64,000 bases of DNA from Bugula neritina (GCA_964035545.1 OZ037770.1:11428463-11492462); one strand, 5' to 3'; shown: positions 876 through 63,138, counted from the stretch's first letter. Made by a program: numbers and translations. The notes: generated by a model not told the origin, from the sequence alone.

Positions 876-3800
876 ATGGCTGCAGCAAAAGAAGTTGAGT
901 GTGGATTCTGTTTACTAAAAGAAGGTTTAGAGAATCCCAAGTGCCTACCATGTGGTCATGTACACTGTTTACTATGTCTTACTCGTAATGTTGATGTGAA
1001 TGACATGATCAGGTGTCCCTGGTGTAGGTAAGTTAGTTTTGTATAGGCAGAGCTGAGACATACTATTTGTAAAGAGTTGATGATTTACATCATATGTTTT
1101 ACCTTCCTCTAAATTATTGCATTCCATTATATATAGTTTCAATTATTACTAAATAATTATGGGTCTTGTCACAGGGAAGTGTTTGATGTGAGAGTGGAAA
1201 GTCTTCCATCTGCTGATGTAGTAGACAACTCCGTATCATGTGACGTCTGCACTAAGAAAGGGATAGAAAAAGTACCAGCAGTCATATACTGTACTGTGTG
1301 CCGGAAACTTCTCTGCAGAAAACATGATGAGGTGATACTTTCATTAAATATTTCTTCAGTTGATGTTCAACACTGCATACACTAACTCAGCCTCTGATTA
1401 CATGAATGTTGGTTTGTCAGAAAACATTTAGAACTCATATTTTACTTTTGTTTTTTGTTTTTCAATAAATGTATATTCTGCTATATTCAGTCACATGATG
1501 ACACCAATGATGACCACCAAAAGATGACCATCTCGGACTACAGAATACAAGCCAAGAGACTGGAGAAAAGAGTTTGTCCCAAACACACAGCATATCCTTA
1601 CTCGCTGGGGTGCAGAGTTTGTGTACAGCTGTTTTGTTTGAAGTGTGCTTCTTCGGGCAACTTGTGTGTTGGAGGTAAGAAAGTTCTGCTGAAGGTTAAT
1701 TCATATTTAGTTTAGTATATCTAATAAACTATATAACCTCTTCAGTGCGGGAGAAGTGGGTGCAGTGTTGGAGAAATTGAGAATAGCCTGTGTTCTATAT
1801 TAGAAATATATCAGGAGAAGTTACGCTCTAGCGAGAATTTCAACCCGCGCCCTAAACCAAAGTTTAGCAGCAAAATTAAAGAGTTTAGTTTGTCTCAATT
1901 TCTCTACTACTAAATGATGTGCAAGCAGCTGTGGTGGTTAGAGCACTGATATTAGTTTGAATCTCAGACATAGTCAGTGGTTGAATTCCGAAGGTTATGA
2001 TGTCAGGAATTGCTTCCCTGTGCTTAGCCTACTTTAAACATCTATTTTACGAGGGGTTCTCACACCTCTGAAACCTACATATTTTATTTGGGGCTCTCAC
2101 ACTAATGGCAACTTTAAAGTCATGTGAATTTTATGACCTCTTCAGTAAATCTATTATTAGATAAGAATAGATAGACTGTAGAGTTTGAGTAGAAGTGCTA
2201 GGAAGCAATGTGTGTTATTATTACTTTAAGAACTTATATCTTCTCATAACCTGTACATCTTGTCTGAAACTTGCCATTCCTATAACTCCTTACATTTCTA
2301 CAGTGATCAGGGTTTTTTAAATATTGACTGCCTAAACAAAGAATTCACTGACATATTAAACTTGTGATCTACCATATAGCATATCATATGGTGATATTTC
2401 AGCTTTTCACCACCTTCTTGTTATGTAGTACTGGCCTTTTAACTGTTTAACTATTGCAAGGTTATATTGCTGTAATGCTATCAGGTTAGTGAAATGTGAG
2501 CTATTTTCTTCATTTACTCTCATTTCAATTTTAGACTCTAAACATGACATGGTTAATCTAGATGACTTAATCAAAGAGCTTATCAATATAGATGATCTTC
2601 TCACCACTGAAGACAAGATGTCTGCTTTCTTCAAACATCTTTCTAAAACTGTGTCAGACTTTGATAATGAGACGGAGGAATTGCTGAATATTCTTCATAC
2701 ACAGCGTGATGAACAGGTTCTGTGTTTATAGAAATACTTTGTGTTACTCTGTAATCTGCATTCTGTAGTCAGGTGTTAGTAAAGCATTGTAATACTAATA
2801 CTTAGGAGTAAAATTTAGGTAATTAGCTACTATTCTATGTGAATTATACCACTATTTTTTGTTTAAGGATTTAGGAATGTTATGCGAAATTATCTATGCT
2901 GTTTTTTGACATAATTCTGAAACACTTTCTCTAATAAGTTGTCAATATTCTACAATGTGCTGATACAATGTATGATGTAGTTGACTGAAGTGAGACTAAA
3001 GTATGAGAAACTGGAGAAGGAATTCTTAGCTAGTAGAAAGAAGAATAAAGAGGAACTGAACAAATACATGGAGAGAGAAGTTGGAACTGTTTTGTCTCAA
3101 CTGAGTAACAGTAGAATGAAGATAGACGCTCAACTTAGACAAAACCATCAGGTGAGCAGTGTTCACCATCTGTTTATATTTAGAATATATTTAGAATATT
3201 GTTTTTATAGGTCTTTAAAGGCCGTAAGCATCCAGGTTATTTATGACATTTGAGCAAAAGTTTGCATGCTTTTCAACTGTTTTATCAGCATTTTATCCAA
3301 TTTCTTATACGAAAACACTACAAAAATGCAAGTAAAAGTGGTCATATTAGGTGTCTTAGACTTGCCCAGACTTGCCCGCGAGCTTGCCCTCCGTGTCCTA
3401 TTCTGACGTGGGGATGGCAAAATAGCCCTATTGTAGCGTGAGTTTATATCGCGTAAAGTTATTAAGAAGCGGGTTTGTCACAGATTCTCGTTATTCGTAG
3501 CTCAAATCACTTGCATGTTACTCTTCGGGCGGCTACTAATAACTAACGTTAGCTACGCAACATCAAGAAAGGTAACTAATTTGACTGTTTTCAAATGGAC
3601 TATTCCATTTCGCTAGTTTGTAACTTGCTGTAAATCACAAAATAATTATTTTTCCTATTTTAATTTCAATTATCATGTCGACCACACTACCAGAAAATCA
3701 CTCTTAAATATGCAGTAAATGATGATTTTCAACCGTTTTGTGATGAACTATAGGTTAGTAGTTGTCTACGTAAAAACAAGTTTTAAAATTTGTAATTGAA

Positions 3801-6800
3801 TCAGTGAATCACAGTATCACTATCACTTATCAGTATGAGTATCACTAGTCTATGTCTATGACTCTCACTCTAAGTCTATGACTATCGCCTATTAGTATTG
3901 GTGAACTATTATTAATAATATCCAATGGTTATATTTATTAATACCATTATTAGTCATAATGATAATCATATGACAGTATCAGTATGTTAATGTTACGGAG
4001 CAGGATCAGTTTCGAAACTAATACTTGTAATATTAGTTATAACTATAAGTATAAGTTATACCGATAGCATTAGCTATATTAACATAAATATTTATATTCA
4101 TAGTAATACTAACAGCAAATCTAATATTATTATGTTAATAGTTATACTTGTAAGTTATAATATAGAGCAAACGACACAAGTATTAATTTGAACTGTTGGT
4201 CTTAAAATAAAAAGTAAAATAAATGTAAATAATAAAATATAAATTATAATAATTTAATTATACTAATACTAATAGCAATACTTATACAGTAATATAATTA
4301 TAATAAATTTAAAAAAACTTAAACAACTTTAGATTTAAGGAACAATTTTAAATACAAACATAAAGATAACATTAAATAATTATAATCATAATGATCATAA
4401 CAATAAATATAATTATGATTCCAATAATTATCAATATATTATATAATATTTAAATTATTTTAATTTATAATTATAATCATAATTTTTTTATTTATAGTGA
4501 ATAAATTCAATTTGACATAATAACTATAATATTATAAAGCAGTCAGTCTATCTCTAATGCTGATTGATATTCAAATTGTTATGACTGTATCATCATTCAC
4601 TAACTCTAAGAGTAAGTGACTACAATTATTAGTATCAATGTTGTGTTAGAGTACTATACCCATTGGAATTTTGATATATCCATTATATTTACAACTCTGC
4701 CTGTTACAGCTATAAATAAATTGAACCAAAATACCAACAGTGCCTAATCATCGCCTTATTTATAAAATAATCACAATCATAATGCTCAAGTTAATAGATT
4801 GGAAATTATTGAAAATTATGTTGATGCCAATATAAATATGACATTGTATGTATCCAAGTAGTGATGTTGTAATATATCTTGGAAGATAATTACAATATAA
4901 TAAGAGTTAAATTCCTCTACGTAACTTTTTTTGCAATTATTCCTTAGAATAACTATAACTTATACTCCTAACATTTAGCAGCGCATTAGTTTTAGATAGA
5001 GCTACTAATTGTATTTATTGCATGTGAAGGTTAGTTATTCTCCATCAGCTGCATGAATGTGACTGGTAAATTCTGTAACCTTTGGCAGTAATAACTTTGT
5101 AGCATAAATTAGACACATTTTTATAAAAATACATAATTTTAATGCTATAGCTGCTAGTAATTCTAATGGGTGTAATAATATTACAGCATTAATTTTTATT
5201 TTGTTCATGCTTCATGAAGCATTTTCTAAATTCTTTTTTGAATAAATTTCTACAATACATATAATGTGCTGAATAGATTACATATGTTGGGGTTCTTCCT
5301 ATACTGCAGCTCAGCCTACACTCCCGCCACAAATGTTCCTAAACTACTAGCTTCATCAGGATACGGATTGATGGAGCTGTATTGATAAAAACTTCTCTTT
5401 TTAGCAGTAGAGGCATCATGAAAAAAAAGGTAAGTATTTTACTCAATAAGAATGCGGTTTTTTACTTCTACAAATTTGATAGCCTACACTATTCTATTTA
5501 AATGGAGACTGGTCTGACATAATGTGTCTGCAATTTATTAGTTATAATATAGTAAATACTATGCGGGCCTATAGATCAAATGGCTCAAAAAAAAAATTAA
5601 ATAAAATATTACACAATGCTGTATTTATTAGCAATGTGATACTTAGCAACTAATTTCACATTATTATTGTTTGCAAAGTTTTATATATCTACATATGTTT
5701 GTTCAATTCAGTGTTCTGAAGAAGAAGGTTCCAACAGCAGGGAAAAGCCTTGAACAAGATATTATGTTCTACATCTCCAACTCATTTTAACTTTGCTGGT
5801 CAGTTCATTGTGTATCTGGAGCATAGTTTTGTATTTTCAAGTAGTTCATCAGATACCTTTGTAGATAGTAAAGATTAAAATGTTTGTGCAATGATGTCCA
5901 TAATGTTGAACTGATTTATTGAAACTAAAACTGTTCTTAATTATAACAAAACTTGACAATCTTTACATAAAGAATAATGTCCTATAATCTATCTTCATTG
6001 TAAACAAAATTAGAAAGTTCCACATCAGCAAATTGTTTATCATCATCTGTAGGTGGAAGAAGCTTGCACTCAGTTATAAAGGCAAGCTGACGGTGGTTTT
6101 CTTTGCCTTCTATGAAGATTTGGAAAGAGCCAGAAAATTAATACTCTATAACTGCAAAACCATGTTGTAGTGTCTTGTGTTATTGATTGAATCATCTAAA
6201 AGAAAAATTGTTGTATCATTATAATTTTACTGTTAAAATGAATTAGCAAATCTACTTATCTTGGTAAATATATTCAAGAACAAATACTATAGTGTAACTC
6301 AGTTTTGGTTATGTGTATGCTCCTTAAGCGAATTTACAGCAGATATCAAACTATATATTAGAGACTGATATAGGAATTAAATTTAAGCTAACCATGATGA
6401 TGTAAATAGCTGTTGAATGTGACTTCGAGAACTCTGCTGGCCATGTCAGTTCAAATACACCAGGGTGATATGTTACGAATGTCATGTCATTATTGAAATT
6501 CAGCTTTTTCAAGTGCCTCTTCACAACTCTGGCAGCATTCTGACTGCTCCTTAGCTTTCTGCGCCTGAAATTTCTTCTACTTGCACCATTCTTCTATTGG
6601 TGGAATGTTAGCCTATAACAAACAGGTGTACCAAAGCTAAAAAATATCTAATTCACTGCACTAGGATATTATTCAACTCATTTAAATTTAATATATAGTA
6701 GTAAAACAATCACATACTTGTATTTATTTTATCAGCTTTACTTTACAAAGCTGAACCATATGATTTAGTAACTTGTCACCATAATAAACATTGTACAACA

Positions 6801-9800
6801 TACAAGTTGAAAACCTGATGTGATTGCTTTTTTAATAGAATATACATCACAAACATGTTACTTTGATAAGCGTGTTCATAATAAAAGTATTAAACCAGTT
6901 TGAAAAAAATTATTTTGTTATGTAATGGATCACAAAACTACATAATTTTAGACCTGTAGCTTGATGTTCTTCAAGCAACGGGCTGCTATGACTAATTAAT
7001 TTTCTATCATTGCATTTGATTGTTCTACTCATAGTGTATTGGCGAGTTAAAATTATTGGTAATTTAATGTATATTTTAGCTACCTCTGTACAATCAATGT
7101 TATAGTAATATCAATTAGGTTTTAAATTTCACTGAGTTTATAGTAAATTATTGCAACTGTTACATAACATTTGGCTAGTTCTCTAGTTCATTAAATAACC
7201 ATACAAACTTAAATTTACAACATGACAAAACACACAAAGCAAAATTAAAATAAGCATATTATGAACCAATGTAATTGATAAGTGATAATGCTGTTGTAAA
7301 ACATGAATTATCAAATTTAAATAGTTGTTATTACTATTAGTATTACTATCATTATAACAACTATAATCATTATTACTATTACTATTAGTATTAGCATTAG
7401 TAGTAAAAAATGAGTAGAGTTCAACATATACAATCTAGCGTACTATAAAATTAAAAGTAGAAGTAGAACTTCTAAAACTATCATCTGCATCATTATCAGA
7501 ACTATGAGTAATACTAGTAGTTGTACTAAGAGTAATACTAATTATTAATACTAATAGACAATAGTAATAGTATCACTATGAGTATGAGACTTGGGCTGGC
7601 AGTGATTATCAGTATCAGCATCGTCATAGTCAAAAGTTACAAGAATTAGAAGCCATATTCATATTGATATTCTCATTGAGTTATGCATAGTCATATTCAT
7701 AGTAATAGACATAGTCAATCACTGATTGAGTTAATGTCATAGTGATACTCATACTCATTATAATTAATTTATACGATACTCATACTCATAGTTATAGAGT
7801 ATCATAGTCATAGTGACACTTCACCGTGAATTTAATAATAATTTTAATTTAATATTATCATTGTTGCTAATGCGGGCTAGTAAGACATAATATTACCATT
7901 AGTAATGGTAATATTATGTCTTACTCTTAGTCTAACAGCAGCTTTATGAAAAAGTTAAACATAACTGATAACAAAACAAATTTAAAAAATAATACTGTAA
8001 CAACCAATATAATGTATATCAATATGCTAGCAACCTAATTTTCAGCTCACTTCATTAACTTTCCGTGCAGTATTGTGATGAAATAATATATTTATTAATG
8101 GTGACCTTGACATCTTTGTCCAAACGCCTTTCACGTCAAGCCCCGAACCAATTTGTAAAAATTTTGGATTTTTTACTTTTGATTATTTTTTACGAAAAGA
8201 GCTTCAAAATAAATTTAAAAAAAAGTGAGCTGTTGTCCACATGAAAAGAAATATATGAGCCAATTTTCTAAATTCAAAAAGTTACCAGAGGGTCACAATA
8301 TTTTTTTTTAAAAATCTGTATTTTCACGGCAAGCTCTATACGTTAATATAGAAAAATAGAAGACAACTCTTCTTTCAGATTTTTCATGTGCCACGGTCAC
8401 GTCAATATCAGTGCTATTAACACATATATTTTAATTCATTTTTTCTGGTATATTGAGTTGAGATTTTTTTTAAATATTTTGTGAATGCAACTAAAAAAGT
8501 ATGAACTTTTAATTAACAGTAATTGATTTTATCGAAATAACCTGGATGCCTACGATGTTTAAGAATGGCTATCGTGTGGCCCTATGCTAAGTTTATCTTT
8601 GTCGTTTATTTCTGTTTCAGCTGTCCTACGATGTTGAAAAATAAAATGAAAATAAAAGAATTTATACAAGTTATTATTTTACATTTGCAGCAATTTTCTT
8701 CACACCAGTCTTGATTATTTACTTCTTTTACAGGTCTTTGGTTTTATGCAAAAGTGTAAACAATCTGCAAGCTATGACATCATATCTGTATAGCTATGAC
8801 ATCACATATGTATAGCTATGACATCATAGCTGTATAGTTATGACATCATAGCTGTATAGTAATGATGTCATAGCGGTCTAGTTATGACATCATAGCTGTA
8901 TAGTTATGGCATCATATCTGTATAGTTATGGCATCATATCTGTATAGTTATGAAATCAGAGCTGTATAGTTATGACATCATAGTTGTATAGTTATGACAT
9001 CATATCTGTATAGTGATGATATCATATCATTTAGTTATGACATCATAGCTGTATAGTGATGATATCATATCATTTAGTTATGACATCATAGCTGTATAGT
9101 TATGACATCATAGCTGTATAGTTATGACATCATAGCTGTATAGTTATGATGTCATAGCTGTATAGTAATGATGTCATAGCTGTATAGTTATGACATCATA
9201 GCTGTATAGTTATGACATCATGATTATACAAATTAGTCAGACCAAGTAAAGTTGTAGAGCTCAAAACCAGACCTAAAGAAAGACTTGAATTTGTTAATAT
9301 CACAATTTCCACCTCCAGATTTTACCTCACAACTACACCTAGAAATAGATTACTATGTACAGTTTATATTAGTATTTGTTTGTCACCACATTTCTGTTCC
9401 GTGTGCACCATATGTATTGTAATTAAGTGAAATTATCTCCACATAACTCTGTATGCTGATATTTGTTATATACTGTAGGTGGATCTGGTTGAAGGATTTG
9501 CAGAGATTAAAGAGAGAATACAGAGACTGATATCTGTTGAGATACCTAAACTAGAGCTGTGTGATGTCATGTCTCTAAAGGTCAAAGGTTAGTATACTAA
9601 ACTAGAACTGTGTGATGTCATGTCTCTAGAGGTCAAAGGTCAGTATACTAAACTAGAGCTGTGTGATGTCATGTCTCTAGAGGTCAAAGGTCAGTATACT
9701 AAACTAGAACTGTGTGATGTCATGTCTCTAGAGGTCAAAGGTTAGTATACTAAACTAGAGCTGTGTGATGTCATGTCTCTAAAGGTCAAAGGTTAGCATA

Positions 9801-11097
9801 CTAAACTAGAGCTGTGTGATGTCATGTCTCTAAAGGTCAAAGGTTAGCATACTAAACTAGAGCTGTGTGATGTCATGTCTCTAAAGGTCATTAATATTTG
9901 GCATTTTATTTGAAAAGTAACCTCATGTGTGTGAAACTATTGGTTTGAAAATTTTAGTTTCTGTTGAAATAGCCCTGTGTCTAGGTTTACTCAGAGCTTC
10001 TATTAATAGAATTTATACACATACTCACTTTTATATGACATACATATTTTATACATACTCACTTATATATAAGTATACACAGGTACACACATATTCACAT
10101 GTATATTGTAGAAGAGAAGAGAGAAATAGAAATAGACTTGGTTCCTACAGCAGACATGATTATTAGTTTAGATCAAGGAGTGACAACTCCTACTCCTCAT
10201 AAATCTCTCAAACTCTTACAGACTGTTGATGTTTCTAGTTACTGTTGGTCTGTCTGTAAATATGATGGCAACACTTATGTAGGGCTGAGTGGTGGAGCAG
10301 GGATAGACAGAATAGATGATAATTTCAGTGTTTTCAAATCATTCATTTCTCTTACCAATTCTGTAACTGGAATCACAGTACATAGGAACAAGCTGTATGC
10401 TGTACAGGGTATCACCAGCACTAATTGGACAGTACATGTGTATGATCTTACTGGGAAACAGGTGACCAGCTGGTCTCATCATGATAGTAGTTGGGCTGTA
10501 AACAAACTTGCTATTGTTGATGATCAGGTTGTAGTTCCTGATAGAGGCAGTAAAAGACTTACAATTTACTCTCTTACTGGGGAGGTAATTAAACATGCTT
10601 CCTGCCCTCTACTCAGCAATAGTAATACAGCAATATGTGCAGCAGACAGACATTGTGTAGTAGTTTCTGACTCCGGTTCCTTTCAAGTATTTAAATTAGA
10701 CTTGACAACAGCGAAAGTCATCTGGACATGCAAGGATGTATCTCAACCAGAAGGTGTGACCTGCTATAGAAGTAAATATATTCTTGTGACTAACCGCAGC
10801 AGTAAAACCACCATCTGGATACTGGATGTGGAAACAGGTTAGTTGTACATTGGTTAGTCAACTACTGTGACCAATATATTAGTATTTCTCACAGTCTCAC
10901 ACTATAAAATATACTATTTTAAGTACTAGTGATGACACACCAATACATCGTTTCCTGTTACAGGTACACAACTGTCCAAAGTAGAAGATCCAACTGATAG
11001 AGCTGAGAGTGGTGTGTATGATCTTCATGTGTATAAAGACACTCTGATTGTACCTAGATACAGTGAGAAGAAAGTTCTGTTTTACCAGCTAAACTAA
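876..11097 (+). CDS. TRIM-family E3 ligase-like protein, copy 1 (RING-HC, B-box x2, coiled coil, NHL-like beta-propeller), about 604 aa
   Basis: Exons with GT/AG boundaries and consistent phases: 876-1027, 1175-1331, 1491-1674, 2535-2716, 2981-3151, 9479-9587, 10112-10837, 10964-11097 (1815 nt, open, ends TAA). Exon 1 encodes CGFC..CGHVHCLLC..CPWC (C3HC4 RING); exons 2-3 encode CDVC..CTVC..CRKH and CPKH..CRVC..CLKC (B-boxes); exons 4-6 are helical/coiled coil; exons 7-8 are repeated beta-strand blades. Confidence 0.88.
3219..8558. mobile_element. Non-autonomous Kolobok-like DNA transposon (5340 bp) in copy 1 intron 5
   Basis: TTAA TSD (3215-3218, 8559-8562); copy 3 has the empty site GTCTTTAAGAATGG. 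Imperfect 24-bp TIR AGGCCGTAAGCATCCAGGTTATTT versus AAATAACCTGGATGCCTACGATGT. Carries a degenerate KolX-like gene on the - strand. Confidence 0.8.
5983..6612 (-). pseudogene. Degenerate KolX / P2X7-C-terminal-like cysteine-rich gene remnant
   Basis: Manual minus-strand translation gives EEWCK*KKFQAQKAKEQSECCQSCE..FVTYHPG (about 6390-6612) and SYRVLIFWLFPNLHRRQRKPPSACLYN* (about 6070-6155), resembling the WC..ECC..HPG and YR...W......R..P.C motifs of that family. Stops and frameshifts are present. Confidence 0.55.
8771..9220 (+). repeat. 22-bp minisatellite (TATGACATCATAGCTGTATAGT), about 20 units, copy 1 intron 5
   Basis: Direct tandem units visible in the sequence. Confidence 0.95.
9547..9890 (+). 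repeat. 51-bp tandem repeat spanning the exon-6 donor, about 7 units, copy 1
   Basis: Unit CTAAACTAGAGCTGTGTGATGTCATGTCTCTAAAGGTCAAAG|GTTAGTATA. Confidence 0.95.
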
Positions 11098-13224: not shown

Positions 13225-15250
13225 ATACTCATACTCATACTGTTTCACACAGTCTCACTCACTTGACTCATAGTGATAGTCAGTGACAGTCACACTGACA
13301 CTCACTTACAGTGCCACGTCTAGTCTTGCTGTCACACTCACTGCCACAGTGTTTTGATAATGACAATCACAATGATTATGATAACATTTCTCATCATCAT
13401 CAACTGCAAGATACTTGTGATTTAGTTACTATTTGTCAGTCTCGTGATCATCTTCTTCTTGAGTTTGTACTTTACGTTCTCATGATGATGATGCTGGTTA
13501 TCATAGTCATAATCATAATGATGTTGAAGTTTAAATTATCAAATGATACAAATTAAAGTATTAGTAAAGCATATGTTTCGTAATTTTATAAAACTGCTCA
13601 ACAGAACTTATTAAACTTACAGGCTTCTACTGTAGACTGTAGAGGTAGATGCAGTAACAGAAGCATTAGAAACCACGTATATTCATACTTATTTACAATA
13701 GAACAATTTCAACTTCTCCACATTGTATTGAATGTCAATAAAATGTATCATTTTTTGGAATATTGAGTGAATTGCAAGGAAAATCTAATTCCAGAACCTT
13801 TAAAATATTTATTGGCTATTAGTATCAATTCTTAGAATATTTATTAAGTGGACTCCTCTTATTAATTTTTTTATTATGTAATAGCTCTGGACCATTATCT
13901 GCAGGTACTGCAGTATGCAAATGTGTATTTAAATCATGGTATTACAATATATAGTTTATTATACAGCAAGGGTTCATTATTGAAAAGATCGTTTTTAAGT
14001 TTTAGAGAGTGCTTAAAATACATTATATCAGCACTGCAGTTTTATAGTTGAGTCACATTCTACAATCTTTAAAGATATTAAATAGTGAGTCAGAAGAGAC
14101 AAACATAGACTACTAAATTCTCTCATTACAGTGAACTACATGGGATCTGAATACACTGTATAATATGTTCTCCTGTTTTATAATATAGAGTTGAGTGAAA
14201 TGGCTGCAGCAGAAGAAGTTGAGTGTGGATTCTGTTTACTAAAAGAAGGTTTAGAGAATCCCAAATGTCTACCATGTGGTCATGTACACTGTTTACTATG
14301 TCTTACCCGTAATGTTGATGTGAATGACATGATCAGGTGTCCCTGGTGTAGGTAAGTTAGTTTCGTATAGGCAGATCTGAGACATATTGTTGGTAGAAAA
14401 ATAGTGATTTACATCATGTGTTTTAACTTATACTGAATTTTTACATTACGTTTTATATATTTTTAATTACTACTGAATAATCATGTGTCTTGTCACAGGG
14501 AAGTGTTTGATGTGAGAGTAGAGAGTCTTCCATCTGCTGATGTAAAGGACAACTCCGTATCATGTGACGTGTGCACTAAGAAAGGGCTGAAAAAAGTACC
14601 AGCAGTCATATACTGTACTGTGTGCCGTAAACTCTTCTGCAGAAAACATGATGAGGTGATACTTTCATTAAATACTTCTTCAGTTGATATTCAACACTGC
14701 ATACTCTAACTCAGCCTCTGATTACATATTGGTGTACTTGAATGTTGATTTATAAGAAAGCACTGAGAGATCATGTTTCACTTTTATCTGTTTTATCTGC
14801 TCTTATGTAAACTGCACATTTATTTTTAGACTTTGCGTTAGTGGGATTTTTTTATGTTCCTATAAATATTTGTAAATGTTTATATCATGTATTTGCAAGT
14901 TTTGTTTCTTTTCCACTAGATGAATAGTTGTGTTATATTTCTCAGTAAATATATATTCTGTTATATACAGTCACATGATGACACTAATGATGACCACCAG
15001 AAGATGACCATCTCGGACTACAGGATACAAGCCAAGAGACTGGAGAAAAGAGTTTGTCCCAAACACACAGCATATCCCTACATACAAGGATGTAGAGCCT
15101 GTCTTCAGTTATTCTGTATGCAGTGCACATCTCAGACTAACTTTTGTGTTGGAGGTAAAAGAATCTACTGAAAGTTATTTGCTAAACATTGGGAAATTTG
15201 ACAAACTATATTACTACCTCAGTAACTCTTGTAATAAAGCTGCCTCCTCT

Positions 15251-15311
15251 AGGAATCAAACTTCAGTCCTCCAACTAGCAAGCTAACGTGCTACCCATTG
15301 CACTATGAGGG
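15251..15311 (-). mobile_element. Degenerate tRNA-derived SINE head
   Basis: Minus strand shows A-box-like TAGTGCAATGGGTAGCAC and B-box-like GTTTGATTCC; no complete cloverleaf. Confidence 0.35.
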
Positions 15312-16909
15312 CTACTAGGGTATCACAACACTAGAAATCTGAAGCTAGTATAGAGAGATGGTGTACTAACTTTACTTATGGTAGAATTATCTAACTCGTT
15401 ATTTTTAAACTAGAGATTCAGCAGTAGGCAAATCATTCTTAAATTTTAAAATGTAGGCGATTGAACATTTAAGATAAAAATTAGAAATAATGAATGTAGG
15501 GCAATAGTAAGGCATTCATGATGATATATAATAATAATTATTTATGTAGCTATTATTATGTCTATTAGTATAGATAGAAATTTCCAATTTTGTCAAGTCT
15601 GCACAATTAATGCAAAAGTTGTACAAGTAGTGGTTATGAGTGCTGTATTCCGTCAAATCTGAGTGAATTTTTGTAAATTCAAATGTCACTCACTTATACA
15701 GCCTGTCTAAGCTTTGTCACGATTTTGCCACGGTGAAGTTTAGTTTTTATTTTCATTTTAGACTCACCACATCACATGGTTAATCTAGATGACTTAATCA
15801 AAGAGCTTATCAATATAGATGATCTTCTCACCACTGAAGACAAGATGTCTGCTTTCTTCAAACACCTTTCTAAAACTGTGTCAGACTTTGATAATGAGAC
15901 GGAGGAATTGCTGAATATTCTTCATACACAGCGTGATGAACAGGTTGTGTGTTTATAGATAATACTTTCTGTTACTCTGTAATCTACATTCTGTATTCAG
16001 GTGTTAGTAAAGCATTGTAATACTAATATTTAAGAGTAACAGTTAGGTGACTAGCTACTATTCTGAGTAAATTAAAACTCTATACTTGGTTAAAATATGT
16101 GATTTTTACAACTCAATTTTTTATGGAATGTTTTCTCTAATGTGTTGTCCATTTTTTACAATGTGATGATACAATGTATGATGTAGTTGAGTGAAGTGAG
16201 ACTAAAGTATGAGAAACTGGAGAAGGAATTCTTAGCTAGTAGAAAGAAGACTAACGAGGAACTGAACAGATACATGGAGAGAGAAGTTGAAACTGTTTTG
16301 TCTCAACTGACTAACAATAGAATGAAGATAGAAGCTCAACTTAGACAAAACCAACCGGTTAGCAGTGTTCACCATCTGTTAATGAAATATGTATATAATC
16401 TTGTTTTCTTTCTCCCAATCTCTAATCATTTACTTTCTTCACACCAGTCTTGATCATTTACTTCTTTTACAGCGTCATGATTTTGTGCAAAAGTGTAAAC
16501 AATCTGCAAGCTATGACATCATAGCTGTATAGTTATGACATCATGATTATACAATTTTGTCAGCCCAAGTAAAGTTATAGAGCTTAAAATTTGGCTTAAA
16601 GCAAGATCTAAATTTGTGAATGTCACAATTTCCACCTCCAAATTTCACCTTACAACTACACTTTAAAATAGAATATTATGCGTAGTTTATATTAGTATCT
16701 GTTTGTTACCACATTTGTGTTCTGTGTGTACCATATGTATTCTAATTGCGTAACGTTATGTAAACATACACAGCGCTGAGGTCTCTAATTAGGTGAAGTT
16801 ATCTCCACATAACTCTGTATGCTGTTTGTTATATACTGTAGGTGGATCTGGTTGAAGGATTTGCAGAGATTAAAGAGAGAATACAGAGACTGATATCTGT
16901 TGAGATACC

Positions 16910-17420
16910 TAAACTAGAGCTGTGTGATGTCATGTCTCTAAAGGTCAAAGGTTAGTATACTAAACTAGAGCTGTGTGATGTGATGTTTCTAGAGGTCAAG
17001 GGTTAGTATACTGAACTAGAGCTATGTGATGTCATGCCTCTGCAGGTCAAAGGTAAGTATACTCAACTAGAGCTGTGTGATGTCATGTCTCTAAAGGTCA
17101 AAGGTTAGTATACTAAACTAGAGCTGTGTGATGTGATGTTTCTAGAGGTCAAGGGTTAGTATACTGAACTAGAGCTATGTGATGTCATGCCTCTGCAGGT
17201 CAAAGGTAAGTAAACTCAACTAGAGCTGTGTGATGTCATGTCTCTAAAGGTCAAAGGTTAGTATACTAAACTAGAGCTGTGTGATGTGATGTTTCTAGAG
17301 GTCAAAGGTTAGTATACTAAACTAGAGCTGTGTGATGTCATGTCTCTAGAGGTCAAAGGTAAGTATACTCAACTAGAGCTGTGTGATGTGATGTTTCTAA
17401 AGATCAAAGGTTAATATACT
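16910..17420 (+). repeat. 51-bp exon-6 donor repeat, 10 units with 3-unit higher-order structure, copy 2
   Basis: Variant order A-B-C-A-B-C-A-B'-C'-B''. Confidence 0.95.
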
Positions 17421-17988
17421 AGACTGTAAAATTCTTGTACTGGTGCACTTTTGTTAAAATATTTAAAATAATCATGTATCTGCATCGAATCTGATAAGTG
17501 CTCTTCATGTGTGTGAAACTGCTGGTTAGAAAATTTGAATATCTGTTGAAATAGCCCTGTGTGTAGGTTTACTCAGAGTTTCTATTAATAGAATTTATTC
17601 ACATACTTACTTTTATATGACATACATATTATATATACAGAATCACCTATATATAAGTATACACACATACACACATATTCACATGTATATTGTAGAAGAG
17701 AAGAGAGACATGGAAGTAGACTTGCTTCCTGCAGCAGACATGATTACCAGTTTAGATCTTCCTAAATCTCTCAAACTCTTACAGTCTGTTGATGTTTCTA
17801 GTTACTGTAGTTCTGTCTGTAAATATGAGGGCAACACTTATGTAGGGCTGAGTAGTGGTGCAGGGATAGACAGAATAAATGAGAGTTTCAGTGTTTTCAA
17901 GTCTTTTATTTCTCTTACCAACTCTGTAGCTGGAGTCACAGTACATAGGAACAAGATGTATGCTCTACAGTATATCAGCAGCACTAAT

Positions 17989-20428
17989 AGAGGCTTTTCA
18001 CAAGCCCTTTGGGGACATTTGTATTTTGAAGTTGTCTCCTCCCAAACGGGCGAAGTGTAGTCTCCATGATATATAGAACAAGCACATAAAATCAGTAGAA
18101 ATTTAAGGTTTGTGTGAAGACTATTGCTAGTACGAGTTTCATTTTTTCTGAGATTATTATTTTGGCATAAGCACACAGGTTAGCAGTTCCAGAAAAATTT
18201 TAAAAATTTTCTTTCTTCAAAAATCTTGAGAGAAATTAACTTCAAAGCATGTTTGTGGTTTTGGTTACTGCATGAGCAAGCTGAATTGGCAGCTATGAGA
18301 TAAGTCCCATTAATCATTTGTTATGCTGGCTGTCATATTCAATTTATAGCTGTTGACCTTTCAACTCTTTGGTCAGAATGTGCTGTTAACACAGTGTGAA
18401 AGCACTGCTACTCTGCTAGTGCACTGAATGAGACAGCAGATTAGCTGTGTTAGCCTTTTTATTACACTTACACGCTTATGCTATGAGAATAGCTAGACTA
18501 TTACCTCAACATCCATCATTTTCACAAAAAGCATTCTCACAAAGCTATAGATATATATTAAATAGACAGATTTAATTTTGTAGTATGGAACGAATATGAA
18601 ATGTGCTTTGATACATGTCGGTTAATTTTCTAATACAGGTTAAATGCATCTATTGCAATTGTAACAATTGTGCTCAAATAAATATATATCTAGATAATTT
18701 AATCAAAAACCGAGATAGCCTTTTAGCAGTTAGCATTCAGGCCCTTGTGTTACAGCTTTGTTATTTCTTAATTATGCATGTGGCTTGTAGCATTTAGGAG
18801 CATGCAGTAGTGAAGAAATTGAGATAGATTAAGTTCTTTAACTTTCGTTACAAATGTTGGTGTTGCGTATAACACAACTTTTTTGCTACATTTCTAATCT
18901 AGAACAAAGGCTTTTCTCAATTTCTCCATTAGTACTGCATCTACCTCGTGTGTAGTAGTCATCTCCGTCAACTGCGGTAGATTCAAGATCCTAGTTAATG
19001 TATGGTATGTTAAAATATAGTTATATAATAAAATGGATATACAATATAAAATAGGTAAACTAAGCTAATCACTACTGCACCTGAAAGCCCAAGTTTCCCA
19101 ACTCATCAAATTGCAGCATAAACTGAATTCTCTGAAAATTACTTTAGAAGGAAATTCTGGTTGAAAAGTATTAAGCAGATTCTTACAAGTGAAGCAGTGA
19201 AAGCATGTTGATAAAATTGGGTAATTAACATTTTGCTTGGGTTTTCAGTTAAACTGTTTAATGTTATAGCTCCTCAACTTCTCATGCTTCAAATATCATG
19301 AGCTAGTGTTATTGACACTCAACTGCAGTTATACAACTAGCTTGGCTGATCCCATGGGTCACAAAATGTTATAAAATATAAAGCCTTTCTTAAATTTGAG
19401 ACTCATATTTGAATGACATAAAATTTTAGAGGTTGGCTATAAGTCACGACAGCACCAATTAGAATATTACAGGTATTATCTTAAAATAGGCATGAGCGAG
19501 GATATGTAAGTTAAAATCAAGTATAACATTTCAATTAAATCTTTTAAATAAAACTATTAGACCTGTTGTAAAATATGCAATGAAGATTTAGAGCCGATAA
19601 AATATTTCAAGATGGATCGATACTGAATAAAAAGATGCCTGCCTAAATATAAAGTGTTTTTAATAAATTTTTGCATAAACTGAGCTTTGCTTTTTTTGGT
19701 AATATTTTTCTTTTAAAGAAGTTTTTAGCCATAACATGAAACTATGTAAGGCATTTACGGTCCTTTGAACATAATGTAGCACAAACTCTTCAAAGTGTAA
19801 TTAAGTGCACATGCTATCACACATCATTTTGATACTACAAATTTAATCTGTCTATTTAATATATATCTATAGCTTTGTGAAAATGCTTTTTGGGAAAATG
19901 ATGGATGTTGAGGTAATAGTCTAGCTATTCTCATAGCATAAGCGTGTAAGTGTAATAAAAATGCTAACACAGCTAATCTGCTGTCTCATTCAGTGCACTA
20001 GCAGAGTAGCAGTGCTTTCACACTGTGTTAACAGCACATTCTGACCAAAGAGTTGAAAGGTCAACAGCTATAAATTGAATATGACAGCCAGCATAACAAA
20101 TGATTAATGGGACTTATCTCATAGTTGCCAATTCAGCTTGCTCATGCAGTAACCAAAACCACAAACATGCTTTGAAGTTAATTTCTCTCAAGATTTTTGA
20201 AGAAAGAAAATTTTTAAAATTTTTCTGGAACTGCTAACCTGTGTGCTTATGCCAAAATAATAATCTCAGAAAAAATGAAACTCGTACTAGCAATAGTCTT
20301 CACACAAACCTTAAATTTCTACTGATTTTATGTGCTTGTTCTATATATCATGGAGACTACACTTCGCCCGTTTGGGAGGAGACAACTTCAAAATACAAAT
20401 GTCCCCAAAGGGCTTGTGAAAAGCCTCT
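17989..20428. mobile_element. Non-autonomous foldback DNA transposon (2440 bp, about 600-bp TIRs, AT TSD; ISL2EU/PHIS-like)
   Basis: 17989-18586 is the near-perfect reverse complement of 19832-20428 (AGAGGCTTTTCACAAG...CTTGTGAAAAGCCTCT). Paralog empty site ACTAATTGGGAGG shows an AT duplication. No transposase ORF; superfamily is inferred from the TSD and termini only. Confidence 0.9.
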
Positions 20429-22835: not shown

Positions 22836-22837
22836 TA

Positions 22838-51839: not shown

Positions 51840-54800
51840 ATGGCTGCAGCAGAAGAAGTTGAGTGTGGATTCTGTTTACTAAAAGAAGGTTTAGAGAATC
51901 CCAAGTGTCTACCATGTGGTCATGTACACTGTTTACTATGTCTTGCTCGTAATGTTGATGTGAATGACATGATCAGGTGTCCATGGTGTAGGTAAGTTAG
52001 TTTTGTATAGGCGGAGCTGAGACATATTGTTGGTAGAAAAATAGTGATTGACATCATGTGTTTTAGCTTATACTGAATTTTTACATTACGTTATATATAT
52101 TTTTAATTACTACTGAATAATTATGTGTCTTGTCACAGGGAAGTGTTTGATGAGAGAGTGGAAAGTCTTCTATCTGCTGATGTAGAGGACAACTCCGTAT
52201 CATGTGACGTCTGCACTAAAAAGGGACTGAAAAAAGTACCAGCCATCATATACTGTACTGTGTGCCGTAAACTCTTCTGCAGAAAACATGATGAGGTGAT
52301 ACTTTCATTAAATATCTCTTCAGTTGATGTTCAACACTGCATACTCTAACTCAGCCTCTGATTATATATTGTTATACTTAAATGTTGGTTTATAAGAAAG
52401 CACTGAGAGATCATGTTTCACTTTTATCTGTTTTATCTGCTTTCATGTAAACTATACATTTATTTTAAGACTTTGTGTTAGTGGGAACCTTTATGTTCCT
52501 ATAAATATTTGTAAATTTTTATATCATGTATTTGTAAGTTTCATTTCTAATCCACAATATGGATAGTTGAGTTATATTTCTCAGTAAAGATGTATTCTGT
52601 TATATTCAGTCACATGATGACACCAATGATGACCACCAGAAGATAACCATCTCGGACTACAGAATACAAGCCAAGAGACTAGAGAAAAGAGTTTGTCCCA
52701 AACACACAGCATATCCCTACATACAAGGATGTAAAGTTTGTGTACAGCTGTTCTGTGCGCAATGCACATCTTGCACTAACTTTTGTGTTGGAGGTAAGAA
52801 AGTTCTGCTGAAAATTATTTACTAATTATTGATAAATCTGATAGGTTGCATAACTACCTCAGTAACTCTTGTAAGATAGCTGCCCTCACCATGAATTGAC
52901 CTGCAAACCTCTATCATGCAACTTCCACTATATGGGCTACTGGGTAATCACAGCACTACAAATTTGAAGCTAGCATAGATAAAGAGTTTATTTTGAGTAG
53001 AAACTCTGTTCAAAAGTATAGTCCATTATTCATTGAGAAATTTTAAAATAGGCAAATAATTCTTAAAATATAAAAAATTAATTGAACGTTTAAAATTGAA
53101 AAAGAGGTCAGAAGTCAGTGAATTGAAGTGCCTCTCACTCGCACAGCGTGTCCAAAGTTTTATATTTTGTTTTTCAATGGCCACGCTGGAGTTTAGTTTT
53201 TCATTGTCATTTTAATTTTAGACTCACCCCATCACATGGTTAATCTAGATGATTTAATCAAAGAGCTTATAAATATAGATGATCTTCTCACCACTGAAGA
53301 CAAGATGTCTGCTTTCTTCAAACACCTTTCTAAAACTGTGTCAGACTTTGATAATGAGACGGAGGAATTGCTGAATATTCTTCATACACAGCGTGATGAA
53401 CAGGTTCTGTGTTTATAGAAAATACTTTGTGTTGCTCTGTAATCTACATTCTGTAGTCAGGTGTTAGTAAAACATTGCAATACTAATACTTACGAGTAAC
53501 AGCTAGGTGACTAGCTACTATGCTGTGTGAATTAAATCACTGTATTTTGTTTAAAAAGTTGCAACTTTTGTAATCAATTCTGAAAAACTTTCTCGAATAT
53601 GTTGTCCACTTTCTGCAATGTGCTGGTACAATGTATGATGTAGTTGACTGAAGTGAGACTAAAGTATGAGAAACTGGAGAAGGAATTCTTAGCTAGTAGA
53701 AAGAAGACTAAAGAGGAACTGAACAGATACATGGAGAGAGAAGTTGAAACTGTTTTGTCTCAACTGAGTAACAGTAGAATGAAGGTAGAAGCTCAACTTA
53801 GACAAAACCATCAGGTGAGCAGTGTTCACTATATGTTAGCATAAGAAATTTAGGCTATGTCTTTTGTGTGAATCTTTAATAATGCACTAGCATGCTGTAT
53901 AGGCATGAAATGCGTTGAAAATTAAAGGAAATAATGTAAGACTCACGTTGACCATCTCCATGCCTAATTATTTATATTCGTTTTAGCTCTATAGTTGTGT
54001 GCTTACAAACTTCAATGTCTTCCAATATGGTGAGTAAAAGAATTGTTTTAAAGTTGTATTGTTCTAAATTTGTAAAATTCACAACTTTTACCAAAGTCTA
54101 TATGTTCCTAAATAGTAGGTATACTAACTATAGTTGATCTAAATAGTTGATTTGGTGCAATATGCTTGTACCAGGCACACCAAGCTTTTTACCCATTTGT
54201 TACTTTATTGGAACTGTCGCACAAAAGATTAGGAAGTTCTCACTAAAAAGACTATCCTTTTAGCCCCACTGACCAATGCTATGCTTGTTCACTGCAGGTG
54301 GATCTGGTTGAAGGATTTGCAGAGATTAAAGAGAGAATACAGAGACTGATATCTGTTGAGATACCTGAACTAGAGTTGTGTGATGTCATGTCTCTAAAGG
54401 TCAAAGGTTAGTATACTAAACTAGAGCTGTGTGATGTCATGTCTCTAAAGGTCAAAGGTTAGTATACTAAACTAGAGCTGTGTGATGTCATGTCTCTAAA
54501 GGTCAAAGGTTAGCAAACTAGACTGTAGAATTCTTGTACTAGTGCACCTTTATTAAGATATTTGAAATAATCATGTATCTGCATTGCATCTGGTAAGTGC
54601 TTTTCATGTGTGTGCAACTACTGGTTAGAAAATTTGAGTATCAGTTGAAATAGCCCTGTGTGTATAAGTCAGAGTTTCTATTAATAGAATTTATACACAT
54701 ACTCACTTTTATATGACATACATATTTTATACATACTCACTTATATATAAGTATACACACATACACACATATTCACATGTATATTGTAGAAGAGAAGAGA

Positions 54801-55751
54801 GAAATAGAAATAGACTTGGTTCCTGCAGCAGACATGATTATTAGTTTAGATCCTCCTAAATCTATCAAACTCTTACAGTCTGTTGATGTTTCTAGTTACT
54901 GTTATTCTGTCTGTAAATATGAGAGTAACACTTATGTAGGGCTGAGTGGTGGAGGAATAGACAGAATAGATGAGAGTTTCAGTGTTTCCAAGTCTTTTAT
55001 TTCTTTTACTAAGTGGGTAAATGGAGTCACAGTACATAGAAATAAGCTGTATGCTCTACATTGTATCAGCAGCAGTAATTGGGAGGTACATGTGTATGAT
55101 CTTACTGGGAAACAGGTGACCAGCTGGTTTCACCATGATAGTAATCGGTATGTAAACAAACTTGCTATTGTTGATGATCAGGTTGTAGTTCCTGATAGGC
55201 ACAGTAAGAGGCTTACAATCTACTCTCTTACTGGGGAGGTAATTAAACATGTCTCCTGCCCTCTACTCAGTAATAGTAATACAGCAATATGTGCAGCAGA
55301 CAGACATTGTGTAGTAGTTTCTAACACTGGTTCCTCTCAAGTATTTAAATTAGACTTGACAACAGAGAAACTCATCTGGACATGCAAGGATGTATCTCAA
55401 CCACAAGGTGTGACCTGCTATAGAAGTAAATATATTCTTGTGACTAACCGCAGCAGTAAAACCACCATCTGGATACTGGATGTGGAAACAGGTTAGTATT
55501 ACATTAATTAGTTAACTACTGTGACCAATATATTAGTATTTCTCACAGTCTCACACTATAAAATATATTATGCTAAGCACTAGTGATGACACACTAATAC
55601 ATCATTTCCTGTTACAGGTACACTACTGTCCAAAGTAGAAGATCCAACTGGTAGAGCTGGGAGTAGTGTGTGTGATCTCCATGTGTATAAAGACACTCTG
55701 ATTGTACCTCGATTCATGGAGAAGAAAGTTCTGTTTTACCAGTTGAACTAA
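51840..55751 (+). CDS. TRIM-NHL-like copy 5, about 596 aa
   Basis: Exons 51840-51991, 52139-52295, 52610-52793, 53222-53403, 53644-53814, 54298-54406, 54790-55491, 55618-55751. Canonical splice sites; open frame. Confidence 0.88.
54366..54520 (+). repeat. 51-bp exon-6 donor repeat, 3 units, copy 5
   Basis: Same unit. Confidence 0.9.
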
Positions 55752-60606: not shown

Positions 60607-63138
60607 ATGGCTGCAGCAGAAGAAGTTGAGTGTGGATTCTGTTTATTAAAAGAAGATTTAGAGAATCCCAAGTGTCTACCATGTGGTCATGTACACTGTT
60701 TACTGTGTCTTACTCGTAATGTTGATGTGAATGACATGATCAGGTGTCTCTGGTGTAGGTAAGTTAGTTTTGTATAGGCAGATCTGAGATATACTGTTGG
60801 TAGAAAAATAGTGATTTACATCATGTGTTTTATCTTATACTGAATTTTTACATTACGTTATATATAGTTTCAATTATTACTAGATAATTATGTGTCTTGT
60901 CACAGGGAAGTGTTTGATGTGAGAGTGGAGAATCTTCCATCTGCTGATGTAGTAGACAACTCCGTATCATGTGACGTCTGCACTAAGAAAGGGATAGAGA
61001 AAGTACCAGCAGTTATATACTGTACTGTGTGCCGTAAACTCTTCTGCAGAAAACATGATGAGGTGATACTTTCATTAAATATTTCTTCAGTTGATATTCA
61101 ACACTGCATACACTAACTCAGCCTCTGATTACATATTGTTATACTTGAATGTTGGTTTGTCAGAAAACATTTAGAACTCATATTTTACTTTTGTTTTTTG
61201 TTTTTCAATAAATGTATATTCTGCTATATTCAGTCACATGATGACACCAATGATGACCACCAGAAGATGACCATCTCGGACTACAGAATACAAGCCAAGA
61301 GATTGGAGAAAAGAGTTTGTCCTAAACACACTGCATATCCCTACATACAAGGATGTAAAGTCTGTTTACAGCTGTTCTGTTTAAAGTGTGTCTCTTCAGA
61401 CAACTTGTGTGTTGGAGGTAAGAAAATTCTGCTGCAGTTATCTGCTAAAGTTTAGTAAATTTAACAAACAACAAGACCTCCTCCGTAGGAGAGCAACAGT
61501 GGTGTAGTCGTTAGAGCACTGGTCAATGGTTTGGAGTCTTAGTGAAGGCCATTGGTGATGCTAGGAAGAGCGTTCAGTCATAATTATTTTATTGCCACAA
61601 TAGAAAACAATACTTTAACCTACTTCCATTAGATGTTTTTTTGTTTTCATCAATATATATATACATAAAGTAAAAAAAATACAAGGGATCACCCAAAGGA
61701 GGTAATGATGAGGCCCAATAGTGCGCCATAGCAGAGGTTAGTCAAAGCCAGAGCCTGAATTGATTAACAATTAGTCAGTTAAGTTAGTCAAGTTATGTGA
61801 ATCAAGTTAAGTCCGTTAAGTAAGTCAGTAAAGTAAGTCAGTTAAGTTAAGTCATAACTCTCCGGCAAGAATGCAAAACCTCACACCCGCCCTGAATGCA
61901 CCAGGATTAGACTGATATTTAAGCTCAGGTTTTAACCTGTTCCATAGCACTGACTCCCGATATCATGTACTTCTTTGACCTGCAATGGTAGGGAAAAAAG
62001 GAACGGGAAGATTTGATATTGAGAAGCGTGTACTGTAGGAGTGAACAATTAAACTTTTGTAAAAAATTTTTGCAGTATATTTTTAAAAAAGATTTTTTGC
62101 ATCACACAGCCCCTCTGACAGGAGTGGCTGTTATAAACCATTTGAGTTTTATGACCTCCTCAGTAGATCTGAGATTAAATTAAATTAAATCAATGGTAGA
62201 GTTTGAGTCAATGTGATATTAAACGATCTGTTTTATTATTGCTTTCAGAATTATTATGTTTTCATAGCTTTTTGTTATGTCATTGAGGAATTAAAATAAC
62301 CTTACCTATGTGATAACTCTATCCAGCAGGCTGTAATGCGAAAAATTGTTTCTGTATATAATATTAGTTTGTTGTTCATCCAGTAGTCTTAGCATGTAGT
62401 GATATTTCAACTTCTCACTACCTTCTTGTTATGTAGTACTGGTTACTTGACTGTCTAACTACTGTAAGGTTATATTACTGTAGTGCTATCAGGTTATTGA
62501 AATGTGGGCTTTTTTCATTTACTTTCATTTAAATTCTAGATTCTAAACACGACATGGTTAATCTAGATGACTTAATCAAAGAGCTTATCAATATAGATGA
62601 TCTTCTCACCACTGAAGACAAGATGTCTGCTTTCTTCAAACACCTTTCTAAAACTGTGTCAGACTTTGAGAATGAGACGGAGGAATTGCTGAATATTCTT
62701 CATACACAGCGTGATGAACAGGTTCTGTGTTTATAGAAATACTTTGTGTTAGTCTGTAATCTACATTCTGTAGTCAGGTGTTAGTACAACATTGCAATAC
62801 TAATACTTAAGAGTAACAGTTAGGTGACTAGCTACTATTCTGTTTTGACTTTAGAATTTAGAAATGTTAAGCAGAAGATATGTGCAGTTTTTTAACTCAG
62901 TTTTGGAAAACTTTTTTCTAATAAGTTGTCAATATTCTACAATGTGATGATACAATGTATGATGTAGTTGACTGAAGTGAGACTAAAGTATGAGAAACTG
63001 GAGATGGAATTCTTAGCTAGTAGAAACAAGACTAAAGAGGAGCTGAACCGATACATGGAAAGAGAAGTTGAAACTGTTTTGTCTCAACTGAGTAACAGTA
63101 GAATGAAGATAGAAGCTCAACTTCGACAAAACCATCAG
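60607..63138 (+). CDS. TRIM-NHL-like copy 6, partial (exons 1-5; continues beyond the window)
   Basis: Exons 60607-60758, 60906-61062, 61234-61417, 62540-62721, 62968-63138. Introns 3 and 5 closely match copy 4. Confidence 0.82.
61635..62060 (-). mobile_element. Paralogous LINE fragment in copy 6 intron 3, further deleted
   Basis: Aligns with 35130-35558. Confidence 0.65.

Follow-up and report, generated by a model that had tools for sequence, protein, structure and literature searches.

How might a family of ubiquitin ligases keep its ligase part constant while its recognition part diversifies? The question is raised by a 64,000-nucleotide stretch of DNA from the bryozoan Bugula neritina (GCA_964035545.1 OZ037770.1:11428463-11492462; the whole stretch is hereafter the window), which carries on its plus strand a tandem array of six copies of an eight-exon, 604-codon gene of the TRIM type (RING finger, B-boxes and coiled coil), with a propeller at the C-terminus and the sixth copy truncated at the window end. 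We conclude that this is probably a young tandem array, of at least six genes, of bryozoan cytosolic TRIM-type E3 ubiquitin ligases with an NHL-like propeller that together form a germline-encoded recognition repertoire.

Comparison of the window with itself revealed tandem units of 9–18 kb, 85–96% identical and each with one plus-strand gene, in DNA of ~35% GC except for one block of 59% GC. Units start in the window at 876 (the ATG of copy 1), 14200, 24515, 33954, 51840 and 60607. Exon 1 encodes the RING, exon 2 a putative B-box 1, exon 3 a putative B-box 2, exons 4–6 the predicted coiled coil and linker, exon 7 most of the propeller, and exon 8 its last strands and the stop codon; exon 6, an extra and almost invariant exon of 109 bases, was revealed by aligning intron 5 of three copies. 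Copy 1 (876–11097) is complete, with exons at 876–1027, 1175–1331, 1491–1674, 2535–2716, 2981–3151, 9479–9587, 10112–10837 and 10964–11097. Copy 3 (24515–29541; exons at 24515–24666, 24814–24970, 25286–25469, 26383–26564, 26807–26977, 27753–27861, 28125–28829 and 29408–29541) and copy 5 (51840–55751; exons at 51840–51991, 52139–52295, 52610–52793, 53222–53403, 53644–53814, 54298–54406, 54790–55491 and 55618–55751) are also intact, as is the open reading frame (ORF) of copy 4 (33954–46888; exons at 33954–34105, 34253–34409, 34724–34907, 36174–36355, 36619–36789, 45529–45637, 45957–46628 and 46755–46888), which has two in-frame deletions, one in a blade 1 loop and one in a blade 2 loop. Copy 2 (14200–21554) is disrupted, its exons lying at 14200–14351, 14499–14655, 14971–15154, 15762–15943, 16187–16357, 16842–16950, 17696–17988 plus 20431–20842 (exon 7, in two parts) and 21421–21554. 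In copy 6 (60607–63138) exons 1–5 lie at 60607–60758, 60906–61062, 61234–61417, 62540–62721 and 62968–63138, and exons 6–8 fall past base 64000.

This gene model is based on splice sites and reading frame; the joined translation was used for the frame check only, and single exons or database proteins, rather than the joined 604-residue model, were the input for searches and folds. AG/GT splice sites and exon lengths are preserved in all six copies, exon 7 (726 bases in copy 1) differing in length only by multiples of three, and copies 1, 3, 4 and 5 each retain an uninterrupted ORF. The model is colinear across its eight exons with ~600-residue Watersipora subatra RefSeq models (tblastn), and a diverged Bugula neritina contig has exons 2–8 in the same order. 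An assembly artefact was ruled out by the ~10% divergence between copies and by their different transposon insertions, and pseudogene decay by the intact ORFs and splice sites together with the low ratio of nonsynonymous to synonymous divergence (dN/dS, or ω) of 0.15–0.21 in exons 1–4.

What protein do these genes encode? In all six copies exon 1 contains the spacing C-x2-C-x13-C-x-H-x2-C-x2-C-x12-C-x2-C, that is, the eight zinc ligands of a C3HC4 RING, and several Pfam RING models match it at E = 2.5e-4 to 8e-3, each below its curated cut-off. Matches of exon 3 to zf-B_box (E = 2e-4, 21.9 bits against a cut-off of 24.1) and of exon 2 to ANCHR-like_BBOX (E = 6e-4, 20.2 bits against a cut-off of 27) were also sub-threshold, with Cys/His spacings that fit by eye. 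Exons 4–6 (~150 residues) occupy the position expected of a coiled coil and align to the matching region of Watersipora TRIM2-like models. The protein starts with the RING and has neither a signal peptide nor a membrane segment. A filamin/Ig domain lies between coiled coil and NHL domain in TRIM2, TRIM3, TRIM71 and TRIM45 and is absent from TRIM32 and Brat; here no Pfam match to such a domain was found, and only ~40 low-confidence residues separate exon 6 from the first propeller strand, so the architecture is of the TRIM32/Brat type.

For the C-terminal domain, a Pfam scan of the exons matched generic propellers weakly and neither NHL nor SPRY, and an Rfam scan of the window gave no match. 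AlphaFold2 folded exon 7, supplied with 58 family sequences, at a predicted local distance difference test (pLDDT) score of 86. A second model, covering the full domain of a family member together with its exon 8 homologue (pLDDT 88), has 24 strands, which make up six four-stranded blades closed by an N-terminal strand. The best template modelling (TM) scores among solved structures (query-/target-normalised) were all to NHL domains, namely those of Brat (0.68/0.73), Thin (0.67/0.71) and Mei-P26 (0.67/0.73); seven-bladed WD40 proteins gave similar Foldseek E-values but lower TM-scores. Moreover, a family profile matched the NHL sequences of Brat, Thin and TRIM3 at E = 1.7e-4 (Brat) to 1.6e-3. 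Because fold model, TM-scores and profile matches all point to NHL domains, the C-terminal domain is predicted to be a divergent six-bladed NHL-like propeller, not B30.2.

On which parts of this protein does selection act, and in which direction? Per-exon dN/dS (Nei–Gojobori) was 0.15, 0.20, 0.21 and 0.21 in exons 1–4 and 0.41, 0.60, 0.84 and 0.47 in exons 5–8, and exons 1–4 (RING, B-boxes and first coiled-coil exon) are under purifying selection. Mean nucleotide p-distance between copies was 3.2%, 3.5% and 2.2% in exons 1, 4 and 6, which a preliminary description of this DNA had already called near-constant, versus 10–15% in introns; exons 3, 7 and 8 stood at 11.2%, 9.2% and 9.9%. The constant E3 ligase proposed in that description applies to the RING and coiled-coil exons, but B-box 2 is an exception: in exon 3, at the coordinates given above for the six copies, synonymous divergence is higher than in any other exon (dS 0.35), and the sequences sort into three deep haplotype groups, one of copies 1/3, one of copies 4/6 and one of copies 2 and 5, which follow the adjacent intron 3. 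The nine variable peptide strings that the same description had quoted for copies 1–5 were all found exactly as written and in that order; in copy 2 that description had read exon 7 across a 2442-bp insertion (17989–20430) that splits it.

Codon site models were run on 13 exon 7 sequences, five from the window copies and eight from Bugula neritina contigs, with our own Goldman–Yang likelihood, whose M0 value (−3363.91) equals that of IQ-TREE and so validates the implementation. M2a was strongly preferred over M1a (2ΔlnL = 188), with 12% of sites at ω = 7.5; dN/dS at the variable sites, for which the preliminary description had proposed diversification, is thus far above 1. When exon 7 was cut into four 60-codon segments, each with its own tree, as a control for recombination, 2ΔlnL was 25–41 with ω2 of 5–13, all significant, and the five window copies alone gave 2ΔlnL = 35. 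Twenty exon 7 codons had a naive empirical Bayes posterior > 0.95 under M2a, with copy 1 codon starts on the plus strand, within 10240–10797, at 10240, 10246, 10288, 10333, 10351, 10360, 10366, 10405, 10408, 10429, 10492, 10495, 10546, 10618, 10621, 10624, 10672, 10744, 10750 and 10795; they were largely recovered both with segment-specific trees and with the window copies alone. In exon 8 (12 sequences, M2a vs M1a 2ΔlnL = 26.8) five further codons were selected, with copy 1 plus-strand starts, within 11005–11064, at 11005, 11011, 11017, 11059 and 11062. Altogether, strong diversifying selection (ω ~5–13) acts on ~25 codons distributed over D-A and B-C loops in all six blades.

Could such a signal arise with no adaptation at all, from unconstrained loops in redundant young duplicates, from old neutral divergence surviving amid conversion, or as an artefact of recombination and multi-nucleotide mutation in the site models? 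Several observations lend themselves to this explanation. When exon 7 residues were classed by DSSP strand order alone into strands, D-A/B-C ('top') loops, A-B/C-D ('bottom') loops and linker, top-loop dN was three times that of the rest (0.15–0.20 vs 0.05), but ω for the top loops as a structural class was near 1 (0.8–1.15, not significantly above it) because many loop residues are invariant; our claim is therefore limited to a subset of sites and rests on the site models. Recombination is heavy (minimum number of events, Rm = 21), one gene copy is already broken by a transposon, and, as the preliminary description had noted in pointing to many multi-nucleotide changes, two or three bases are changed in 52% of the codon pairs that differ at selected sites, versus 15% elsewhere. 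Against these stands a tree-free comparison in which the 20 selected exon 7 codons had a proportion of nonsynonymous differences (pN) of 0.42–0.46, three times the proportion of synonymous differences (pS) in the same codons, which at 0.13–0.15 was barely raised over the 0.11 found elsewhere; old neutral divergence or a mutation hot spot would have raised both, and the hot spot was rejected on this ground. The mean pN of the 20 most divergent codons (0.489) also exceeded the maxima of 100 uniform-neutral (0.350) and 100 M1a (0.407) simulations, the signal recurs in each of the four segments with its own tree, and single hypervariable codons stand between synonymously invariant ones, which conversion tracts cannot explain. 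Furthermore, the same positions are hypervariable in a distant genus: in an independent test on ten Watersipora paralogs, the 20 exon 7 positions had an entropy of 1.74 bits, as opposed to 0.49 bits for the remaining folded positions (p = 3e-9). Neither relaxed constraint nor a purely mutational origin is likely, and we regard the absence of any adaptive diversification as very improbable.

Where on the propeller do the selected residues lie? Twelve of the 20 exon 7 sites are in D-A/B-C loops, five at adjoining strand ends, two lie three residues into such strands and one is near a bottom loop, so that 17 are in or beside D-A/B-C loops (Fisher p = 7e-5), while the A-B/C-D loops and linker contain none. 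The exon 8 sites occupy the D5-A6 loop, the beginning of strand A6 and the B6-C6 loop, and together with those of exon 7 they make all six blades contribute. By standard strand topology, the selected sites would thus lie on one propeller face, as the preliminary description had anticipated. The clustering of propeller differences in loops that it observed exceeds chance, as across 58 family members the D-A/B-C loops had a mean entropy of 1.78 bits, compared with 0.86 bits for the A-B/C-D loops (Mann–Whitney p = 8e-5); the β-strand scaffold and the opposite loops are conserved.

The chemistry of this face bears on what it might bind. Selected sites are enriched in Tyr (16% vs 4%), Asn, Gln and Ser but not in charged residues (16% vs 19% elsewhere), and of the 'aromatic or charged' substitutions highlighted in the preliminary description only the aromatic part is borne out. 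That description also drew an analogy to RNA binding by Brat and LIN-41, and one alternative is that the variable face binds RNA in the same way, making these proteins sequence-specific post-transcriptional repressors that track fast-evolving RNAs, for example transposon or viral transcripts, or regulators of host mRNAs. The nearest relatives in sequence and fold are indeed the RNA-binding NHL domains of Brat, Mei-P26 and TRIM71, in which RNA sits on the D-A/B-C loop face, and transposons are active at the locus, with two recent insertions within gene copies. However, the 87 top-face residues carry a net charge of only 0 to +6 in five copies, which is not markedly basic, and the selected sites, rich in Tyr, Ser, Asn and Gln and with 7% Lys plus Arg, have a composition more typical of protein-binding surfaces. 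The analogy is therefore not backed by the charge of the face, and RNA recognition seems unlikely.

How has the array come to combine a near-constant scaffold with divergent loops? The closest pairs of copies change from one intron to the next, being copies 2 and 5 in intron 1 (4.8%), copies 1 and 6 in intron 2 (0.6%), copies 4 and 6 (3.6%) and copies 1 and 3 (6.9%) in intron 3, and copies 2 and 3 in intron 7 (1.9%). With the selected codons removed from exon 7, the four-gamete test (Hudson–Kaplan Rm) indicated at least 21 recombination events in the 13 sequences and at least five in the window copies. Recombination or gene conversion between copies has made exon 7 a mosaic, and the array units are themselves patchworks of old blocks. 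In blade 4 (copy 1 10627–10746 and homologous parts) synonymous divergence was 0.055, about a third of the ~0.16 in blades 1–3, which suggests recent homogenising conversion or constraint at the nucleotide level. In the nucleotide alignment, hypervariable codons are flanked by runs identical in all copies even at synonymous sites. The scaffold is under concerted evolution, while selection keeps the loop codons different.

Variable patches set between stretches of DNA identical in all copies, loop variants common to copies in differing combinations, and frequent recombination are also what a targeted mutational process acting without selection would leave, whether templated conversion from donor cassettes or hypermutation of loop codons of a somatic type. 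Against it, the synonymous rate in the selected codons is barely raised, as given above. Neither a separate cassette library nor patch-flanking repeats were seen in the window, and the differences are fixed germline differences between paralogs; we find this explanation scarcely credible.

How large is the family, and in which organisms does it occur? A word search returned 55 ORFs from JGI samples, 51–87% identical to the propeller exon of copy 1, plus one Watersipora protein; none of these relatives reached 90% identity to any window copy. The contig label of the JGI ORFs, AY690838, is the accession of the Bugula neritina mitochondrial genome. An exhaustive profile search of a representative library gave 607 clusters (50% identity) at E ≤ 1e-3, 191 of them at E ≤ 1e-30. 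All named hits that were checked are Watersipora subatra models, on at least eight chromosomes, and on sequence similarity the window genes appear to belong to a large family whose named matches, among those checked, are bryozoan only. DNA of relatives was taken from 11 single contig look-ups. Scans of a metagenome contig collection that apparently lacks the Bugula samples, by protein alignment and by a degenerate 32-base motif taken from the best-conserved part, gave no match. In a search for full-length Bugula transcripts, an alignment headed by a 604-residue Watersipora protein recovered paralogs from Watersipora only. One Logan contig (L013, run SRR4125604) contains at 86–1495 an intron-free 469-codon ORF covering the exon 4–8 homologues without RING or B-boxes; because this ORF is uninterrupted across those exons, it may be a partial, spliced transcript or a retrocopy of a family member, or reflect an alternative start. 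Searches of the literature turned up no account of this family or of a diversifying TRIM-NHL expansion.

A family restricted to bryozoans among named hits also raises the possibility of allorecognition. Bryozoans are colonial and able to fuse or reject, and the array might serve recognition between colonies, or some other recognition within the species, with balancing or negative frequency-dependent selection, and not pathogens, maintaining its diversity. Strong diversifying selection on a single surface, shuffling by recombination and a multi-copy locus fit allorecognition loci as well as immune genes. Known allorecognition determinants are, however, mostly surface or secreted proteins, whereas a cytosolic RING E3 ligase is predicted here from the lack of signal peptide and membrane segment; moreover, hundreds of dispersed paralogs, on the Watersipora chromosomes mentioned above, suit a repertoire better than one or two polymorphic loci. 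Allorecognition as the role of this array is accordingly a rather improbable alternative.

For the recognition repertoire that we favour, the following scheme can be proposed by analogy with other TRIMs. The coiled coil would dimerise the protein, as elsewhere in the TRIM family, and the variable face, rich in Tyr, Ser and Asn, would be the ligand-binding surface; because of this, each paralog would recognise a different target and then ubiquitinate or sequester it, and the family as a whole would constitute a germline-encoded repertoire of specificities. Fast-evolving non-self would be the most likely target, be it viruses, products of transposons or microbes inside cells. The array would be renewed, and its loop variants reshuffled, by tandem duplication, unequal crossing-over and conversion of short tracts, with selection keeping the loops different. 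The preliminary description had likewise seen here an invertebrate analogue of immune TRIMs with a variable propeller; the evolutionary pattern (diversifying selection on one face) agrees with it, while the immune role is suggested by analogy.

Several points weigh against this reading. The Pfam NHL model went unmatched and the RING and B-box matches all lie under their Pfam cut-offs. The eight additional exon 7 sequences come from gene calls and are hence open by construction. Recombination, which is heavy at this locus, and multi-nucleotide mutations can both inflate site models, and the top loops as a class do not have ω significantly above 1. Placement of the selected sites on one face was deduced from strand order rather than from three-dimensional coordinates. 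Finally, a transposon has disrupted one of the five complete copies and loops of copy 4 carry deletions, which may mean that some members are in decay.

How does this system compare with those already described? Primate TRIM5α and TRIM22 and the fish finTRIM and bloodthirsty-like TRIMs combine a RING, a B-box and a coiled coil with B30.2 (PRY-SPRY), occur in tandem arrays, and evolve by loop-focused positive selection, duplication and recombination. The Bugula array resembles them in its purifying selection on the RING–B-box–coiled-coil E3 scaffold, in its tandem multi-copy organisation, in positive selection on surface loops of the C-terminal recognition domain, and in duplication with recombination. 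It differs from them in having a predicted six-bladed NHL-like propeller instead of B30.2, with selected residues spread over 12 loops of one face, and in its bryozoan host. The same evolutionary logic, that of a constant ligase with a hypervariable face and tandem arrays reshuffled by recombination, thus appears on another fold; the fast-evolving antiviral TRIMs known to us so far all use B30.2, and bryozoan immunity is, as far as we are aware, almost unstudied.

With canonical TRIM-NHL proteins (Brat, Mei-P26, Thin/TRIM32, LIN-41/TRIM71, TRIM2 and TRIM3) the window genes share the domain order, the six four-stranded blades and the N-terminal closing strand, but they differ in their hundreds of members and fast loops, and in having no Pfam NHL match, no filamin domain and no clearly basic top face. 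Canonical TRIM-NHL proteins are slowly evolving, low-copy developmental regulators, and surveys class their genes in the conserved group (Sardiello et al., 2008, PMC2533329; Marin, 2012, PMC3503706). The slow evolution and low copy number of such Group 1 TRIMs are not what we found: there are at least six tandem copies, 607 clusters, and ω ~7.5 on 12% of propeller sites.

The Watersipora subatra proteins annotated in RefSeq as 'uncharacterized protein' or 'tripartite motif-containing protein 2-like' (e.g. XP_067949534.1, XP_067940943.1) are members of the same family, of ~600 residues, colinear over eight exons, with many paralogs and the same hypervariable positions. They are only 36–40% identical to the window copies in the propeller, and among the Watersipora proteins conservation is no higher in the N-terminal part than in the propeller (69% vs 75% pairwise identity). 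Literature searches found no published analysis of these models. The positions under selection are the hypervariable ones in two distant bryozoan genera. A further parallel is with the Caenorhabditis F-box and MATH-BTB proteins, also large lineage-specific families for substrate recognition in ubiquitin ligation; work by Thomas in 2006 is said to have found positive selection in these expansions confined to the substrate-binding domain and to have proposed that they target pathogen proteins. Those are cullin adaptors with other recognition folds and in another phylum, unlike the single-chain RING E3 described here.

Extending these observations to the phylum, we tentatively envisage, as a possibility short of a probable one, a bryozoan repertoire of hundreds of germline-encoded intracellular receptors that use an NHL-type propeller as the variable module of a TRIM E3 ligase. 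Each would have a Tyr/Ser-rich surface of ~25 residues drawn from 12 loops, the set would be renewed by tandem duplication and fine-scale gene conversion, and it would act against viruses, transposons or symbionts, or in colony allorecognition. If this is true, the repertoire would be the first diversified family of receptors of this kind to be built on a propeller, and the view of TRIM-NHL proteins as conserved developmental regulators would be overturned. The ~25 defined residues and their natural variants provide a handle for asking what invertebrate cytosolic receptors recognise, and the array displays concerted evolution coexisting with diversifying selection at single-codon resolution.

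Other features of the locus include mobile and repeated DNA. The element inserted in exon 7 of copy 2 (17989–20430, 2442 bp) has 600-bp terminal inverted repeats that are 99% identical; it contains no ORF of at least 90 residues, has no second copy within the window, and shows at its junction a duplicated AT that may be a target-site duplication. The insertion is recent, because the copy 2 ORF is intact after its removal in silico. Intron 5 of copy 4 holds, on the plus strand, a Ty3/gypsy-type long terminal repeat (LTR) retrotransposon of 7990 bp (36823–44812), with 59% GC against a host background of 35%. Its 391-bp LTRs (36823–37213 and 44422–44812) differ by three mismatches, the target-site duplication is the 4-bp ATAG, and the ORFs are open, with gag at 37266–38165, pol (protease, reverse transcriptase, RNase H and integrase) at 38162–42835, and a third ORF of 503 residues at 42607–44118 that has no Pfam match; the element is apparently complete. 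In another Bugula neritina contig (L001, 3444–10001) the last exon of a family member lies 7 kb downstream of its propeller exon because intron 7 is occupied by a retroelement whose reverse transcriptase, RNase H and integrase lie on the opposite strand. Insertions of transposons into family genes seem to be common.

Intron 6 carries on the plus strand a 51-bp minisatellite (9546–9890, 16909–17425 and 54368–54524), with 0 to 10 units per gene copy, that repeats the last 52 bases of exon 6 with its GT donor. Each unit constitutes a cryptic donor, and read-through of the first donor meets an immediate stop codon. A second minisatellite, of 22 bp and 8 to 20 units, occurs in intron 5 of copies 1, 3, 4 and 6 (8773–9221, 27266–27495, 45007–45190 and 63361–63742). 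Also in intron 5, and in copy 1 only, lies ~5.3 kb of very AT-rich DNA (~3220–8557; 26–29% GC) with no long ORF and no similarity elsewhere in the window. Lastly, an insertion of ~450 bp is present in intron 7 of copies 2 and 3 only (20903–21353 and 28890–29340), these introns being 98% identical.

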